Of a stretch of 64,000 bases of DNA, positions 2,962 through 64,000 are shown in pieces. The notes under the pieces were generated by a model. The model made no database searches. It had not been told where the DNA came from and saw nothing but the letters and a program-made list of their open reading frames with translations. This stretch comes from Paramoeba atlantica (Eukaryota > Protista > Discosea). The stretch covers positions 36,946 through 100,945 of the forward strand of contig CDRNVI010000105.1 of assembly GCA_977017575.1 (NCBI GenBank). Reading direction: 5' to 3'. Within the stretch, counting starts at the first letter, position 1. Each line of letters begins with the position of its first letter. A program made the translations under genes and the position numbers.

Positions 2962-3456
2962 ATGGGGTCATTTTTGTGTATTTGTTTTCATTCACGAGAT
3001 CCGATATTTGCTCGTGGGAAATCACTCGTAGGCATGAATGAAAGCCTGCCGAACGTATTGGGTAAAGAATGCGACCCCAACCCCAAGAATGGCGACCTAA
3101 TGTATGATGTGGACGCAAAGCTCAGGTTACTAAAATTCCATTCGTATAATATATATTTGTGCAAGGTAAAGGCGCACATTGGAAACAAATGGAATGAGGA
3201 GGCAGATGGTCTAGCACTTTTGGCATCACGAAAAGTGGCACGGGCTCCGACCCAAAAAAGGAGAAAAACAACTGCTAACTCGGAGGATAGTGAGAATTCA
3301 CAACCGTCATGGTCTTTGAAAGCCTTACTCAAAAGGAAGTCCCTTGGAAATAAGCAAGCACGAGACATTCCATCATCGAAGCGCGAAGCTGAGGCGGAAG
3401 GGGTATTTCGAGGGAAGGTTGCGAGAGCTGGAGGTAATAGGAAACCGTCTAAGTAG
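2962..3456 (+). pseudogene. C-terminal fragment of an RNase HI-type domain plus basic low-complexity tail, unit 1
   Basis: KNGDLM and KVKAHIGNKWNEEADGLA match the RNase HI motifs KNxDLW and WVKGHxGxxxNExADxLA. The His-to-Asp spacing of 10 matches E. coli H124/D134. In-frame stops lie just upstream and there is no DG(S/A) first catalytic motif, so the domain is N-truncated. Confidence 0.8.
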
Positions 3457-3663
3457 GGAGAGAATTGATGGAATTATTTCTTTGCCAACTTAGAATGCCT
3501 TGAGGATTATTCATAGGTTATCGGAAAAATATTGTTTGTTTGTACCGTATCAGACACATATAAACTCTGAACGTGGAAGCGATAGATGAAAGCTTTCAAG
3601 GTGTAAACATTAAGTTTTTCAACCGACTTTACGTCGGTCTTTTGGATTGGATATTGGATTGGA
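2962..3663 (+). mobile_element. Probable 3' end of a 5'-truncated RNase H-bearing non-LTR retrotransposon (representative; present in all 15 full units; 5' boundary approximate)
   Basis: RNase H fragment, stop at 3456, ~170-nt 3' UTR, hairpin ACCGAC-tttac-GTCGGT (3622-3638), then TTGGA TTGGA TA TTGGA TTGGA (3642-3663). The same end structure terminates the TSD-flanked 401-bp insert. No TSD was found for this copy. Confidence 0.6.
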
Positions 3664-27159: not shown

Positions 27160-27205
27160 GGAGAGAATTGATGGAATTATTTCTTTGCCAACTTAGAATG
27201 CCTTG

Positions 27206-27606
27206 GTTCTGAGCCTTGCTCAGGCTCAGAAAGGGGAGAGTGGGGGGAGGGTTAGTTCAAAAACTATTCAGACTATGAATCGTCCTCGAAAAAATTGTAG
27301 CCAAATTCCTAAGCCATTAGGTAAGAGACGAGATTACTTCAAGACTGTGGTAGGTGATCCCCTCCCCAAAAAGGGTACCTCGCCTCCTGTAGATGCCGGA
27401 ATGAATTCTACCGGGGAGAATGAATGCTTGCCTGAAGAACCTGACTCCGAAAATAAAAACTCGCAGGAAGGACGTTCCACGCCCGGTTCAAAGGCCAAGG
27501 AGCATAAAAGTGCAGGTTCACCGGATAGTAAGACGTTGAAACGCAAAAATGACAGATGTACTCTTAACCGATGAAAATCGGTATTATTGGATTGGATTGG
27601 ATTGGA
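27206..27606 (+). mobile_element. 401-bp 5'-truncated retroelement insertion with 13-bp TSD and (TTGGA)4 tail, unit 7
   Basis: The empty site ttagaatgccttg occurs once in 12 units and is duplicated here (27193-27205 and 27607-27619). The body has an open frame to TGA 27574, hairpin ACCGAT-gaaa-ATCGGT (27567-27582) and tail 27587-27606. Confidence 0.9.
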
Positions 27607-39501: not shown

Positions 39502-39547
39502 GGAGAGAATTGATGGAATTATTTCTTTGCCAACTTAGAATGCCTTG

Positions 39548-39948
39548 GTTCTGAGCCTTGCTCAGGCTCAGAAAGGGGAGAGTGGGGGGAGGGTTAGTTC
39601 AAAAACTATTCAGACTATGAATCGTCCTCGAAAAAATTGTAGCCAAATTCCTAAGCCATTAGGTAAGAGACGAGATTACTTCAAGACTGTGGTAGGTGAT
39701 CCCCTCCCCAAAAAGGGTACCTCGCCTCCTGTAGATGCCGGAATGAATTCTACCGGGGAGAATGAATGCTTGCCTGAAGAACCTGACTCCGAAAATAAAA
39801 ACTCGCAGGAAGGACGTTCCACGCCCGGTTCAAAGGCCAAGGAGCATAAAAGTGCAGGTTCACCGGATAGTAAGACGTTGAAACGCAAAAATGACAGATG
39901 TACTCTTAACCGATGAAAATCGGTATTATTGGATTGGATTGGATTGGA
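39548..39948 (+). mobile_element. Same 401-bp insertion, unit 10
   Basis: TSD at 39535-39547 and 39949-39961. Appears identical to the unit 7 copy (same 123-aa ORF). Confidence 0.9.
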
Positions 39949-43882: not shown

Positions 43883-43928
43883 GGAGAGAATTGATGGAAT
43901 TATTTCTTTGCCAACTTAGAATGCCTTG

Positions 43929-44329
43929 GTTCTGAGCCTTGCTCAGGCTCAGAAAGGGGAGAGTGGGGGGAGGGTTAGTTCAAAAACTATTCAGACTATG
44001 AATCGTCCTCGAAAAAATTGTAGCCAAATTCCTAAGCCATTAGGTAAGAGACGAGATTACTTCAAGACTGTGGTAGGTGATCCCCTCCCCAAAAAGGGTA
44101 CCTCGCCTCCTGTAGATGCCGGAATGAATTCTACCGGGGAGAATGAATGCTTGCCTGAAGAACCTGACTCCGAAAATAAAAACTCGCAGGAAGGACGTTC
44201 CACGCCCGGTTCAAAGGCCAAGGAGCATAAAAGTGCAGGTTCACCGGATAGTAAGACGTTGAAACGCAAAAATGACAGATGTACTCTTAACCGATGAAAA
44301 TCGGTATTATTGGATTGGATTGGATTGGA
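43929..44329 (+). mobile_element. Same 401-bp insertion, unit 11
   Basis: TSD at 43916-43928 and 44330-44342. Appears identical to the unit 7 copy. Confidence 0.9.
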
Positions 44330-57893: not shown

Positions 57894-59479
57894 TTCTTAA
57901 AGTTTCCCTACTTTTGTAGACATTTCAAAAAGATGCGAAGGACCCTACTAGAGCACTTAATCATAAACAATTTTGTACATAACAAACCCCCAGAGCCACC
58001 ATCATCAAAAATAATTCTCAAGAATTTCTCCTCATTGATGCAAAACGTCTCTTTTAACGCCTTTTATTTTTGTTTTCGCATAGCCGCCCCCCTCTACCAC
58101 CAATAAACGCATAAACATTTATCAGCCCCAATGCTACCAAGACCCTTCACAGACAGATTTGGAAGTTCCAAGGCCGACGTCCTCTACCAGTTTTCGCTTT
58201 TCCAAGGCGGCACCAACGTTATGTTACCAACACGCTGCTTCGACGACTTGTATGACAACGCGGCCCACCCAAGAGGCTTAAACCGGGTAAGGGGGCCGGC
58301 TCCCTGATGGGAGGAGGGGAAGAAGAATCCAATCCAAAAAGAAGAAGAAGAGAAGAGAACCGGTTCCCTGATGGGAGCGCCCCTGGCGGCCGTCAGAGTA
58401 CTGGGCCTAGTCGATTCTCAGCCCAGCCTCTTAGATCGAGGCCGCCGGGAATTATGCGATGAGCGGGTTCGAAACTTTGATCCCTGAAGGAAGAAGGAAG
58501 AAGGTTGCTCGACTAAATGATGCTTTCCAATGTAGGGAAGTTACTTCGACAAGTGCTTGTGTAGGCTCTAGTTGAATCTTTAGTGTCTCAACGAGGTTCT
58601 GCCAATCTTAAAGCAGAGATTTAAGCCGGGCCGAGGGGTCTGGCCTTTATTTGGGTAGCTTCTACAGAGGAAAGCGGTGTAATTGTAGTTGGAGACGGTG
58701 GGCCTTACAACCTGCAGGTTGGGGGTTATATTCCCGATATCGACAAAACTCGCAACCTGCCGGCCTCACTACAAAGGGAAAGCGACCAGGAGTGCCTTCA
58801 AGTCCCACACCCAACCCCAAATCAATCATTCCGGATTGCTCCGGATGGCCACTGGCAAGCCAGACCCTTCACAGAAAGATTTGGAAGTTCCGAGGCCGAC
58901 GTCCTCTATCAGTTTCCGCTTTTCCAAGGCGGCACCAACGTGCTGTTACCAACACGCTGCGTCGACGAACTGTACGTCAACACGGCTTACCCAAGAGGTG
59001 TAAGCCGGGTAAGGGAGCTCGTTCCCTGAGGGGAGGGTCCGGGACGGTCCTCCGAGTACTGGGCCTAGTCGGTTATTAGCCCAGCCTCTTAGAGGGAGGC
59101 CGCCAGGAATATTTCGATGAGCGGGTTTGAACTCGCCGTCTGAGCACCACGTGCTTGAAACTTTGAATTCTTGCTGCTACGCCACCGCTCGGAAAAAGTC
59201 CGCTAGGAAGAAGGCCTCCCTCTGGAGGAACGACCCGGAACCGCAGAGCCGAACCAGGCTCCAGCGCAGCCGCCGAAAATTCATGCTTCTTACGCAAACG
59301 AGGCATGAGACACAGCCTACACGATGCAACGGGGTTGGACGCCCGTCCTGGTAGCTACGGTTGGGTACCCGTGCTCGGGCCGCAAGGCTTCGAGTGCCGT
59401 CTTGGAAGGGGGCAGCAAGACAATGAAGGTCGGTAGCTTGAGACTCTACCCTAACGGTGCAGAGCCCTCGGTGTCTTTT

Positions 59480-59581
59480 CTTCTTCTTCTTCTTCTTCTT
59501 CTTCTTCTTCTTCTTCTTCTTCTTCTTCTTCTTCTTCTTCTTCTTCTTCTTCTTCTTCTTCTTCTTCTTCTTCTTCTTCTT

Positions 59582-59611
<30 letters not shown>
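59480..59611. repeat. (CTT)44, unit 15
   Basis: Directly visible. Confidence 0.99.
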
Positions 59612-59612
<1 letters not shown>

Positions 59613-59714
59613 TTCCCCAGAGTCCTGAAAGCTGGTTTGCAACTCTACTACCGCGTTTAACGAAAAGCCTAAATTGAAATATTATAGCCAAAAATAGCCG
59701 ATTTTCGGGTAAAA

Positions 59715-60209
59715 ATGGGGTCATTTTTGTGTATTTGTTTTCATTCACGAAATCCGATATTTGCTCGTGGGAAATCACTCGTAGGCATGAATGAAAGCCT
59801 GCCGAACGTATTGGGTAAAGAATGCGACCCCAACCCCAAGAATGGCGACCTAATGTATGATGTGGACGCAAAGCTCAGGTTACTAAAATTCCATTCGTAT
59901 AATATATATTTGTGCAAGGTAAAGGCGCACATTGGAAACAAATGGAATGAGGAGGCAGATGGTCTAGCACTTTTGGCATCACGAAAAGTGGCACGGGCTC
60001 CGACCCAAAAAAGGAGAAAAACAACTGCTAACTCGGAGGATAGTGAGAATTCACAACCGTCATGGTCTTTGAAAGCCTTACTCAAAAGGAAGTCCCTTGG
60101 AAATAAGCAAGCACGAGACATTCCATCATCGAAGCGCGAAGCTGAGGCGGAAGGGGTATTTCGAGGGAAGGTTGCGAGAGCTGGAGGTAATAGGAAACCG
60201 TCTAAGTAG
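59715..60209 (+). pseudogene. RNase H C-terminal fragment, unit 15
   Basis: Copy of 2962..3456. Confidence 0.8.
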
Positions 60210-61142
60210 GGAGAGAATTGATGGAATTATTTCTTTGCCAACTTAGAATGCCTTGAGGATTATTCATAGGTTATCGGAAAAATATTGTTTGTTTGTACCG
60301 TATCAGACACATATAAACTCTGAACGTGGAAGCGATAGATGAAAGCTTTCAAGGTGTAAACATTAAGTTTTTCAACCGACTTTACGTCGGTCTTTTGGAT
60401 TGGATATTGGATTGGACCCCAACCACACCATTCTTCCGACCCAAAAAGACCCCTTGAGGTCCGAAAAATACTTTTTCACCTATTTCAGTCGAAAATGGGT
60501 CATTTTGAGTGGCGCACCACGGCTCGAAGAAGAGATACCTTGAGAAACCAAAGGCCGAGAAAGCTAGTATAGGCCCCGAACTATCAAAATACAACAGGGG
60601 AAAGAATATTGAAAAAATATTTTCTTTGCCAGTTTTTTCGCCAAGTTGAATTTTTTTTCAAAAACATCCGAACTTGGCGGACCCGTCCTGCGGATACGAG
60701 GGGGGGCCACCCCCGGGTAGGGGGCGGAAAATAAGCGCCAACCCCGGCTACCCCTTCTGCGGGTTTTTTTCGAAAAAAAAATTTCAAAAAAAAAAATCGT
60801 GCGGTATGCCCCCCTGTGTTCCTCTTTATATTTTCACTGTTTTTGTTCACTCTTTTTTCAATAATCGAGGGTAGAGTGGTAGTTATACAACCACCGCAAT
60901 ATAATAATTAAGATATCGCCCAAAGCCCCACCATGAGCGGACAAAGAACCTGCCACTCAAATGCTTGAATTAGCGCTACCCGGCTTCACATGCGATAACT
61001 GAGTTTCGTTTTGCTCGAGAACTCACGAGATACACCTTGCCAGGGGACCCTCCAGTGTGAAGTGGGTTTCAAATCTTGAACTCATCTTTTTTGATATTTT
61101 CAAAAATATTTACTCAGTCCGCTACTTTTTTAAAATAACAAA

Positions 61143-61904
61143 TTGATGAATTTCGGGCTTCAAGTTTCCAGCCCTCCCTCATGCAAGGTATTTGTGGATG
61201 GGGTGCCAGATGTTGAAATCGAGGAAAGCGATATTTTCAAACAGAAGTTATGCGTCACGCCAAAACATCTCCAACGATCCTCCGTAATCCTGTTTTCTTC
61301 TCTTTCTCAACCCATAGGAATTTCCACGTCGAGCGGGGACCAATTCGTGTTAGACCCGGAGGGTGGAGCCGTTAACTTTACTTGTGCGAGCATGTTGAGC
61401 ATCACGTTTCACAATCTTTTAAAGAAGGAAGCAGAAAGTGTATGTAGAGATGTTCTTGGTCTTTTTCAAGACAATTTTGTTAATCCTTCATCTGGGGCCC
61501 TTTCATACGACTACGTGAGGAACCAGATTGATCAGAAATACCTTTTTAATGTTTTGAAGTTTCAGAGAATGGTTAAAAATGCAGGCAACCCATTTTACCA
61601 ATACCTTGGGAAAGACCTTTGCAGGTGGATAGTTTTGCATTCAAGTTCAAAAAAGCCCAATTTTGGATTTACACGAGGAAAAGAGTATAGTGATCTCTTA
61701 AAATTTTCTGTTAGCCAGATCATGGGGGAAGAAGTTGCGATGAGCGACCTTTATCAGCTGGTAAGGGGTGAGAAAACCTTTGATTTGCTCCTTTCTTCAA
61801 ATTTTACTGTGTTGAAAAAGTTTCTTGTGAAATTTAATGCTGAGTTTCTTTGGTTTCAAGATGAGGCTTCAAAAAAGACATTAATTTCCACAAATCCCCT
61901 TTGA
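61143..61904 (+). CDS. Orphan 253-aa protein, unit 16 (truncated unit, ORF intact)
   Basis: Copy of 418..1179. Confidence 0.7.
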   Translation: MMNFGLQVSSPPSCKVFVDGVPDVEIEESDIFKQKLCVTPKHLQRSSVILFSSLSQPIGISTSSGDQFVLDPEGGAVNFTCASMLSITFHNLLKKEAESVCRDVLGLFQDNFVNPSSGALSYDYVRNQIDQKYLFNVLKFQRMVKNAGNPFYQYLGKDLCRWIVLHSSSKKPNFGFTRGKEYSDLLKFSVSQIMGEEVAMSDLYQLVRGEKTFDLLLSSNFTVLKKFLVKFNAEFLWFQDEASKKTLISTNPL

Positions 61905-62843
61905 TTCTTAAAGTTTCCCTACTTTTGTAGACATTTCAAAAAGATGCGAAGGACCCTACTAGAGCACTTAATCATAAACAATTTTGTACATAACAAACCC
62001 CCAGAGCCACCATCATCAAAAATAATTCTCAAGAATTTCTCCTCATTGATGCAAAACGTCTCTTTTAACGCCTTTTATTTTTGTTTTCGCATAGCCGCCC
62101 CCCTCTACCACCAATAAACGCATAAACATTTATCAGCCCCAATGCTACCAAGACCCTTCACAGACAGATTTGGAAGTTCCAAGGCCGACGTCCTCTACCA
62201 GTTTTCGCTTTTCCAAGGCGGCACCAACGTTATGTTACCAACACGCTGCTTCGACGACTTGTATGACAACGCGGCCCACCCAAGAGGCTTAAACCGGGTA
62301 AGGGGGCCGGCTCCCTGATGGGAGGAGGGGAAGAAGAATCCAATCCAAAAAGAAGAAGAAGAGAAGAGAACCGGTTCCCTGATGGGAGCGCCCCTGGCGG
62401 CCGTCAGAGTACTGGGCCTAGTCGATTCTCAGCCCAGCCTCTTAGATCGAGGCCGCCGGGAATTATGCGATGAGCGGGTTCGAAACTTTGATCCCTGAAG
62501 GAAGAAGGAAGAAGGTTGCTCGACTAAATGATGCTTTCCAATGTAGGGAAGTTACTTCGACAAGTGCTTGTGTAGGCTCTAGTTGAATCTTTAGTGTCTC
62601 AACGAGGTTCTGCCAATCTTAAAGCAGAGATTTAAGCCGGGCCGAGGGGTCTGGCCTTTATTTGGGTAGCTTCTACAGAGGAAAGCGGTGTAATTGTAGT
62701 TGGAGACGGTGGGCCTTACAACCTGCAGGTTGGGGGTTATATCCCCGATATCGACAAAACTCGCAACCTGCCGGCCTCACTACAAAGGGATAGCGACCAG
62801 GAGTGCCTTCAAGTCCCACACCCAACCCCAAATCAATCATTAT

Positions 62844-64000
62844 AGAGGAAGAAAGAGGAAGAAAGAGGAAGAAAGAGGAAGAAAGAGGAAGAAAGATAAA
62901 GAAAGAGGAAGAAAGAGGAAGAAAGAGGAAGAAAGAGGAAGAAAGAGGAAGAAAGAGGAAGAAAGAGGAAGAAAGAGGAAGAAAGAGGAAGAAAGAGGAA
63001 GAAAGAGGAAGAAAGAGGAAGAAAGAGGAAGAAAGAGGAAGAAAGAGGAAGAAAGAGGAAGAAAGAGGAAGAAAGAGGAAGAAAGAGGAAGAAAGAGGAA
63101 GAAAGAGGAAGAAAGAGGAAGAAAGAGGAAGAAAGAGGAAGAAAGAGGAAGAAAGAGGAAGAAAGAGGAAGAAAGAGGAAGAAAGAGGAAGAAAGAGGAA
63201 GAAAGAGGAAGAAAGAGGAAGAAAGAGGAAGAAAGAGGAAGAAAGAGGAAGAAAGAGGAAGAAAGAGGAAGAAAGAGGAAGAAAGAGGAAGAAAGAGGAA
63301 GAAAGAGGAAGAAAGAGGAAGAAAGAGGAAGAAAGAGGAAGAAAGAGGAAGAAAGAGGAAGAAAGAGGAAGAAAGAGGAAGAAAGAGGAAGAAAGAGGAA
63401 GAAAGAGGAAGAAAGAGGAAGAAAGAGGAAGAAAGAGGAAGAAAGAGGAAGAAAGAGGAAGAAAGAGGAAGAAAGAGGAAGAAAGAGGAAGAAAGAGGAA
63501 GAAAGAGGAAGAAAGAGGAAGAAAGAGGAAGAAAGAGGAAGAAAGAGGAAGAAAGAGGAAGAAAGAGGAAGAAAGAGGAAGAAAGAGGAAGAAAGAGGAA
63601 GAAAGAGGAAGAAAGAGGAAGAAAGAGGAAGAAAGAGGAAGAAAGAGGAAGAAAGAGGAAGAAAGAGGAAGAAAGAGGAAGAAAGAGGAAGAAAGAGGAA
63701 GAAAGAGGAAGAAAGAGGAAGAAAGAGGAAGAAAGAGGAAGAAAGAGGAAGAAAGAGGAAGAAAGAGGAAGAAAGAGGAAGAAAGAGGAAGAAAGAGGAA
63801 GAAAGAGGAAGAAAGAGGAAGAAGAGGAAGAAAGAGGAAGAAAGAGGAAGAAAGAGGAAGAAAGAGGAAGAAAGAGGAAGAAAGAGGAAGAAAGAGGAAG
63901 AAAGAGGAAGAAAGAGGAAGAAAGAGGAAGAAAGAGGAAGAAAGAGGAAGAAAGAGGAAGAAAGAGGAAGAAAGAGGAAGAAAGAGGAAGAAAGAGGAAG
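62844..64000 (+). repeat. Purine-only 10-bp tandem repeat (AGAGGAAGAA)n, ~115 copies, open at window end; candidate telomeric repeat or satellite
   Basis: Directly visible. Only two variants: GAAAGATAAA at 62891-62900 and a 1-nt deletion near 63823. It starts abruptly inside array unit 16. The repeat is certain; the telomere role is inference. Confidence 0.97.

Follow-up and report, generated by a model that had tools for sequence, protein, structure and literature searches.

The 64,000-nt stretch of DNA analyzed here (the window) holds a macrosatellite followed by a tract of a purine-only 10-nt repeat. Positions 1 to 62841 form a single array of 16 head-to-tail copies that are 99.5 to 99.97% alike, and positions 62844 to 64000 are filled by (AGAGGAAGAA)n. 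The array carries an ORF with homologues in the endosymbiotic kinetoplastid Perkinsela and, in every full unit, the remnant of an RNase H domain. The original prediction, which had proposed the 10-mer as a candidate telomere repeat, placed the tract distal to a tandem array with a repeat that we find to be 3.95 to 4.4 kb long, and that placement was borne out.

Structure of the tandem array

Fifteen of the copies are complete (positions 1 to 60725 on the + strand; 3945 to 4395 nt each), and the array runs off the start of the window. The last copy, at 60726 to 62841, is partial (2.1 kb). Differences from unit to unit amount to between 1 and 19 substitutions across 3911 ungapped columns. Purine-rich islands occur in every unit (e.g., 58309 to 58364 and 58487 to 58507), and each contains a diverged internal duplication of a 275- to 340-nt element (58133 to 58473 versus 58855 to 59131; 81 to 86% identity), the first copy of which bears a 64-nt purine-rich insert.

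A (TCT)n microsatellite was detected by Tandem Repeats Finder in every full unit (15 sites), with 23.7 to 47.7 copies among otherwise near-identical units. In unit 15, it spans positions 59474 to 59615 and is pyrimidine only on the + strand, the polarity opposite to that of the tract at the end of the window. About 100 nt separate this microsatellite from the start of the RNase H-remnant ORF downstream of it; on the coding strand, this position would suit a kinetoplastid polypyrimidine tract for trans-splicing.

Canonical telomere motifs were not found even twice in tandem anywhere in the window, and this includes TTAGGG and its complement, the motif expected of a kinetoplastid. The window likewise yielded no tRNA or spliced-leader-like sequence.

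Coding content and origin of the DNA

One ORF of the unit encodes 252 amino acids (61146 to 61904, + strand, in the last copy of the array) and reads toward the tract. A search with this protein returned four proteins, one of which, from ENA metagenome contigs, is 97% identical, while the others share 32 to 34% identity. The more distant homologues include the hypothetical protein XU18_1888 of Perkinsela sp. CCAP 1560/4 (32%) and an MMETSP transcript. One 252-aa transcript from MMETSP shares a 90% cluster with the array ORF, which suggests that the amplified array copy is expressed. The distant homologues are single copy, and their synteny is preserved in the Perkinsela reference and on two metagenome contigs (0.72 and 1.44 Mb). 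They adjoin ABC1-kinase and proteasome genes, in a neighborhood of proteasome, histone, and topoisomerase genes on nuclear contigs of 0.47 to 1.4 Mb, about 150 to 190 kb from the nearer contig end. The array ORF is accordingly a diverged and amplified paralogue of a conserved single-copy Perkinsela gene, present in at least 16 copies. The protein matched no family in Pfam or NCBIfam; its AlphaFold model is poor (pLDDT, 61.8; pTM, 0.42), and no PDB match fell below an E value of 0.01.

A second ORF, of 164 amino acids (59715 to 60209, + strand), occupies the same place in every full unit and retains just the C-terminal RNase H motif (...KVKAHIGNKWNEEADGLA...). It matches RNase H in Pfam (E = 0.011) and RNase HI in NCBIfam (E = 0.007) and is probably what remains of a retroelement of the ingi/L1Tc type that the array unit captured. 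The published Perkinsela genome contains ingi/L1Tc-type retroelements and SIDER-like sequences (PMC5601477 and its supplement), and elements of this type would account for the RNase H debris.

Because the 252-aa ORF has its homologues in Perkinsela sp. CCAP 1560/4, and with the array itself present in two ENA metagenomes, we assign the window on grounds of homology to the nuclear DNA of an endosymbiotic kinetoplastid that is Perkinsela-like. Its G+C content (42 to 50%) matches that of the nuclear loci that hold the single-copy homologues (47 to 48%). Across 62 kb of core Perkinsela DNA, neither purine nor pyrimidine runs reached 20 nt.

The two metagenome assemblies, ERZ24900291 and ERZ26867466, contain the array at 95 to 99% identity. 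The array contigs (ctg3644c, ctg3685c, and ctg24089_1.45x_c) are 16 to 20 kb long and consist of pure tandem array without flanks. We take the suffix “c” in the contig names as the assembler's circular flag; the contigs are almost certainly collapsed repeats rather than real circles. ERZ24900291 carries two different variants of the array. The variant in ctg3644c has a unit of about 4.39 kb, is 95 to 98% identical, and includes in every unit an extra inverted copy of the segment corresponding to 58817 to 59186 (e.g., at 3087 to 3461), which is missing from the variant in ctg3685c. The two variants represent either two loci or two strains.

The 10-mer tract

Tandem Repeats Finder described positions 62844 to 64000 (+ strand) as an array with a period of 10, 115.8 copies, 99% matches, and 0% indels, in agreement with the raw sequence. 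The length of 1157 nt is a minimum, since the distal side is cut by the end of the window and position 64000 is still part of the repeat. The raw sequence deviates from AGAGGAAGAA at just two places in the whole tract. One is the only substituted unit, AGATAAAGAA (62894 to 62903), which is the sixth from the junction with the array. The other is the loss of one A from an AAA run (about 63822 to 63824, within 63814 to 63832), which shifts the register by 1 base from position 63823 onward. The + strand of the tract contains no C and a single T, that of AGATAAAGAA, and the repeat unit itself is purine only; the complementary strand reads (TTCTTCCTCT)n. The original prediction had described at least 1.15 kb of a nearly invariant 10-mer lacking T and C, with the G-containing strand pointing to the end of the window, and it had judged the repeat a poor former of G-quadruplexes. 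The first two statements agree with the counts given above, and the third is a fair one: the longest G run in the tract is GG.

A two-unit probe allowed up to 2 mismatches had 113 matches in the window, all of them within the tract, against an expectation of 0.00 from 100 dinucleotide-preserving shuffles. The array gave no match to this probe, either between or inside units. The minimum free energy of the tract is 0 for either strand, so no Watson-Crick structure is predicted. No reading frame contains a stop codon; the repeat peptide is RGRKRKKEEE in all three forward frames and FFLFLPLSSS in reverse.

The passage from array to tract is abrupt. Homology of the last, partial copy to the internal units ends right after ...AAATCAATCATT, an AT dinucleotide follows (62842 to 62843), and the 10-mer then begins without degenerate transition repeats. 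At the corresponding point, internal units proceed with CCGGATTGC... (e.g., at 58830/58831). The junction thus coincides with the boundary between successive internal units, where ...ATCATT is followed by CCGGATTGC....

As a short-unit array with complete purine/pyrimidine strand asymmetry, the tract has the makings of a micro- or minisatellite. It also resembles a telomere in being a long head-to-tail array in which the only substituted unit is proximal (the sixth) and a 1-nt deletion is distal, a pattern that young satellites display likewise. The G-bearing strand runs 5' to 3' toward the end of the window, as it does in telomeres, an agreement that counts only if this end is a true terminus.

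Occurrence of the 10-mer in public sequence data

An exact 40-mer of the repeat had 9 hits in JGI metagenome contigs, 2 in GTDB genomes, and none in IMG/VR. The eleven tracts are 45 to 123 nt long; they are either internal to their contigs or at the edges of 5- to 8.5-kb contigs. BLAST found no similarity between these contigs and the window; they carry unrelated microsatellites. A search of 1.84 billion cluster representatives with the forward repeat peptide at any length returned one genuine match, a 205-nt interstitial tract between genes on an alga-like contig, and the other hits were Lys-, Glu-, and Arg-rich proteins. A local control established that phmmer does detect repeat peptides of this kind. 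In unrelated contigs, both eukaryotic and metagenomic, the identical 10-mer occurs as an interstitial microsatellite of 45 to 205 nt that is bounded on either side by unique DNA, whereas the tract described here is at least 1157 nt long and has one boundary within the window.

Peptides of the ORFs that span the junction on both strands had no match among public gene calls of about 240 to 770 aa. In gene calls that comprise about 15 billion public proteins, including those of the two assemblies that contain this organism's array, there was no second long tract. This absence is weak evidence, given that the array is covered at about 1.45x in one of the metagenomes and that GA-rich DNA is undersequenced; the two metagenomes, in which the related contigs consist of array only, may omit the chromosome ends of this organism.

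None of the papers found in a literature search gives the 10-mer as a telomere repeat or deals with the telomeres of the Perkinsela nucleus. Telomeres, TTAGGG, and TERT go unmentioned in the paper on the Perkinsela genome and in its 15 supplementary files (PMC5601477).

A GA-rich satellite or a telomere

We prefer, with evenly balanced confidence, the reading in which the tract is a nontelomeric GA-rich satellite, including the case in which the assembly merely stops there. A polypurine/polypyrimidine simple satellite with a 10-bp unit would flank a recently homogenized 4-kb macrosatellite, in a repeat-rich nuclear region, subtelomeric or otherwise heterochromatic, of a Perkinsela-like kinetoplastid. 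The tract would most likely have grown and become uniform by replication slippage, unequal exchange, or gene conversion between repeats, and the same processes would keep the array uniform and vary the length of (TCT)n. The end of the tract in the window would then not be a chromosome terminus but a place where the window, and possibly a long-read assembly, happens to stop.

Several observations argue for a satellite. The locus evidently makes and homogenizes repeats anyway, because its 4-kb units have reached 99.5 to 99.97% identity without templated synthesis and its (TCT)n tracts vary from 23.7 to 47.7 copies. This bears on a further point of the original prediction, that the homogeneity of the tract fits templated synthesis: the fit stands, but it does not discriminate, as the adjoining units are equally uniform without such a process. 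The array units contain purine islands of their own, the 10-mer is common elsewhere, and no second tract was found. Since the junction falls at a natural unit boundary, there is no need to invoke chromosome healing, and the site looks as the outer margin of a tandem duplication would.

Not all purine-only satellites belong to telomeres: AGAGGG arrays, for example, are found at the centromeres of barley (PMC9241371). GA-rich tracts are also known to cause coverage dropout in HiFi data and broken assemblies (PMC9186530, PMC9241371). Because such tracts break assemblies, the fact that a contig stops in one cannot be taken as a sign that the chromosome ends there. Among nontelomeric examples, the AAGAG-type satellites of Drosophila are also purine only. 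The tract shares with the barley and Drosophila satellites a short purine-only unit, a long pure array, repeat-rich chromatin, and retroelement debris, and those satellites, too, are underrepresented in HiFi assemblies or break them. They differ from it in having units of 5 to 7 nt and in occupying centromeres or heterochromatin of large genomes over hundreds of kilobases to megabases; here, the unit is 10 nt, the genome is roughly 10 Mb, and at least 1157 nt of the tract is seen.

Other observations count against a satellite. A perfect tract of more than 1.1 kb would be exceptional in so compact a genome, in which the core Perkinsela loci lack even 20-nt runs, and the commonest long short-unit arrays in such a genome would be telomeres. 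The polarity is telomeric, an orientation that would otherwise have a 50% chance of occurring. The abrupt start of the tract and the position of the only substituted unit near its proximal end form a pattern seen in telomeres as well.

The chief alternative, which we regard as tenable though not favored, is that the tract is a true telomere in which a purine-only 10-mer has replaced TTAGGG, through either a changed telomerase template or recombination, and that the 4-kb array is the subtelomere. Much of what is seen at the locus would follow. The purine strand, which bears the G residues, runs 5' to 3' toward the end of the window; at least 115 copies are 99% identical, with the one substituted unit sixth from an abrupt junction; a homogenized array with retroelement debris adjoins the tract; and the genes of the array are oriented toward it. 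The window lacks a canonical telomere motif, and long purine runs are otherwise missing from core Perkinsela loci. The two array variants in one metagenome look as if several chromosome ends carried the array, although a mixture of strains would look alike.

There is also precedent for purine-only end repeats in reduced endosymbiont nuclei. As the original prediction stated, and as the literature confirms, such repeats are terminal in cryptophyte nucleomorphs: GA9 in Cryptomonas paramecium, GA13 in Chroomonas mesostigmatica, GA17 in Hemiselmis andersenii, and [AG]7AAG6A in Guillardia theta, where they adjoin long homogenized subtelomeric repeats (PMC3017389, PMC3514955). The tract resembles these telomeres in its purine-only unit, in its setting in the reduced nucleus of a eukaryotic endosymbiont, and in the homogenized repeats next to it, and GA9, like the unit described here, is 10 nt long. 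However, the nucleomorph repeats are proven to be terminal by telomere-to-telomere chromosomes and telomere clones, whereas the window stops inside the tract. The unit found here has four G residues per 10 nt compared with one in GA9, and the nucleus is that of a kinetoplastid rather than a red-algal remnant. Chromosome ends of Dictyostelium carry purine-only A(G)1-8 repeats next to a tandem array. The tract is likewise purine only and lies beside such an array, but the Dictyostelium repeats are irregular in length, in contrast to the strict 10-mer seen here, which is terminal only as a candidate.

Comparison with kinetoplastids weakens the case for a telomere. To our knowledge, all known kinetoplastid telomeres are TTAGGG, and the kinetoplastids studied so far have kept this motif together with the proteins that bind it. 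The host lineage would be the same as for (TTAGGG)n, and the G-bearing strand would again run to the end, but the motif is wholly different. A second end with the repeat was not found among public gene calls, telomere-like islands are absent between and within the array units, and each of the positive features is also common to young satellites. Orientation, purity, the abrupt junction, and the array setting fit a telomere and a young GA-rich satellite equally well.

In its most specific form, the proposal that the tract is a telomere would have a Perkinsela-like kinetoplastid, a permanent endosymbiont of an amoeba, abandon TTAGGG for (AGAGGAAGAA)n, an end repeat unable to form G-quadruplexes that converged on the GA-type telomeres of cryptophyte nucleomorphs, which are the other well-studied case of reduced nuclei in eukaryotic endosymbionts, with the array as subtelomere; we put this forward a shade more tentatively than the telomere assignment as such. 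The template of the telomerase RNA would then be roughly UUCUUCCUCUUUCUU. This would be the first non-TTAGGG telomere in Kinetoplastea and the second, independent case of an endosymbiont nucleus that adopted purine-only end repeats. It would raise the questions of what took over from the TTAGGG/TRF system, both as telomerase RNA template and as proteins that bind the ends, and whether endosymbiotic reduction favors purine-only repeats. Should the tract be no more than a GA-rich satellite, it would be routine for a repeat-rich locus, and its practical lesson would be that assemblies of this genome may break at this point. For now, the tract is best described as a polypurine simple satellite beside a macrosatellite, with a substantial chance of being the first non-TTAGGG telomere of a kinetoplastid.

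Unlikely explanations: artifact, kinetoplast DNA, and retroposon tail

We consider it improbable that the tract is an artifact of sequencing or assembly, in which a GA-rich tract that was in truth shorter or more variable became inflated, was reduced to a single uniform consensus, or was misjoined to the array. Accurate long reads are weak in GA-rich tracts (PMC9186530, PMC9241371), the lone missing A in an AAA run resembles a consensus error, and the array itself is misassembled in the public metagenomes into the 16- to 20-kb contigs with the presumed circular flag. However, the 62 kb that flank the tract show unit-specific variants and plausible length variation, which point to good read support. 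The junction is clean, and a 10-nt unit that is so well defined and includes a specific variant is rarely artifactual.

[quoted passage not shown] We think this highly unlikely: the content of the array is not mitochondrial, in that its ORF is intact, unedited, and a paralogue of a syntenic nuclear gene; the unit holds RNase H debris of a nuclear retroelement; and the G+C content agrees with that of the nuclear loci.

The ingi/L1Tc elements end in poly(A), and this is one of several reasons to give the lowest probability to the tract being the 3' simple-repeat tail of a non-long-terminal-repeat (non-LTR) retroposon with the 3' end ...AAATCAATCATT; Perkinsela does have ingi/L1Tc-type elements and SIDER-like sequences, and the unit has both an RNase H remnant and the duplicated 275- to 340-nt element, but no reverse transcriptase, endonuclease ORF, or intact element lies upstream, the RNase H remnant is about 2.6 kb upstream in unit coordinates, the duplicated element stops about 350 nt short of the junction, none of the 15 internal copies of the same point bears such a tail, and 1.1 kb is well above known tail lengths.

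Minor features of the array unit

The duplicated element contains a GC-rich hairpin (58381 to 58450) and a GGTTCGAA box. In stability, this hairpin does not stand out from its shuffles (z = -1.5); it has one covarying pair and no match in Rfam. We had considered an HDV-like or Pr77-like element in the unit and dropped it, as the Pr77 sequence of L1Tc (PMC1874656) shares the heptamer CCCTGGC alone. No Rfam family reached its gathering score in the window, where the search gave only chance-level snoRNA matches (E of about 0.2).

A 414-nt segment is present in 3 of the 15 full units, namely, units 7, 10, and 11 (27193 to 27606, 39535 to 39948, and 43916 to 44329), and is bounded by the 13-nt direct repeat TTAGAATGCCTTG. 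Either most units lost it through microhomology-mediated deletion, or it was inserted with duplication of its target. The same segment occurs with 100% identity in the ENA contig ctg24089_1.45x_c (6838 to 7251).
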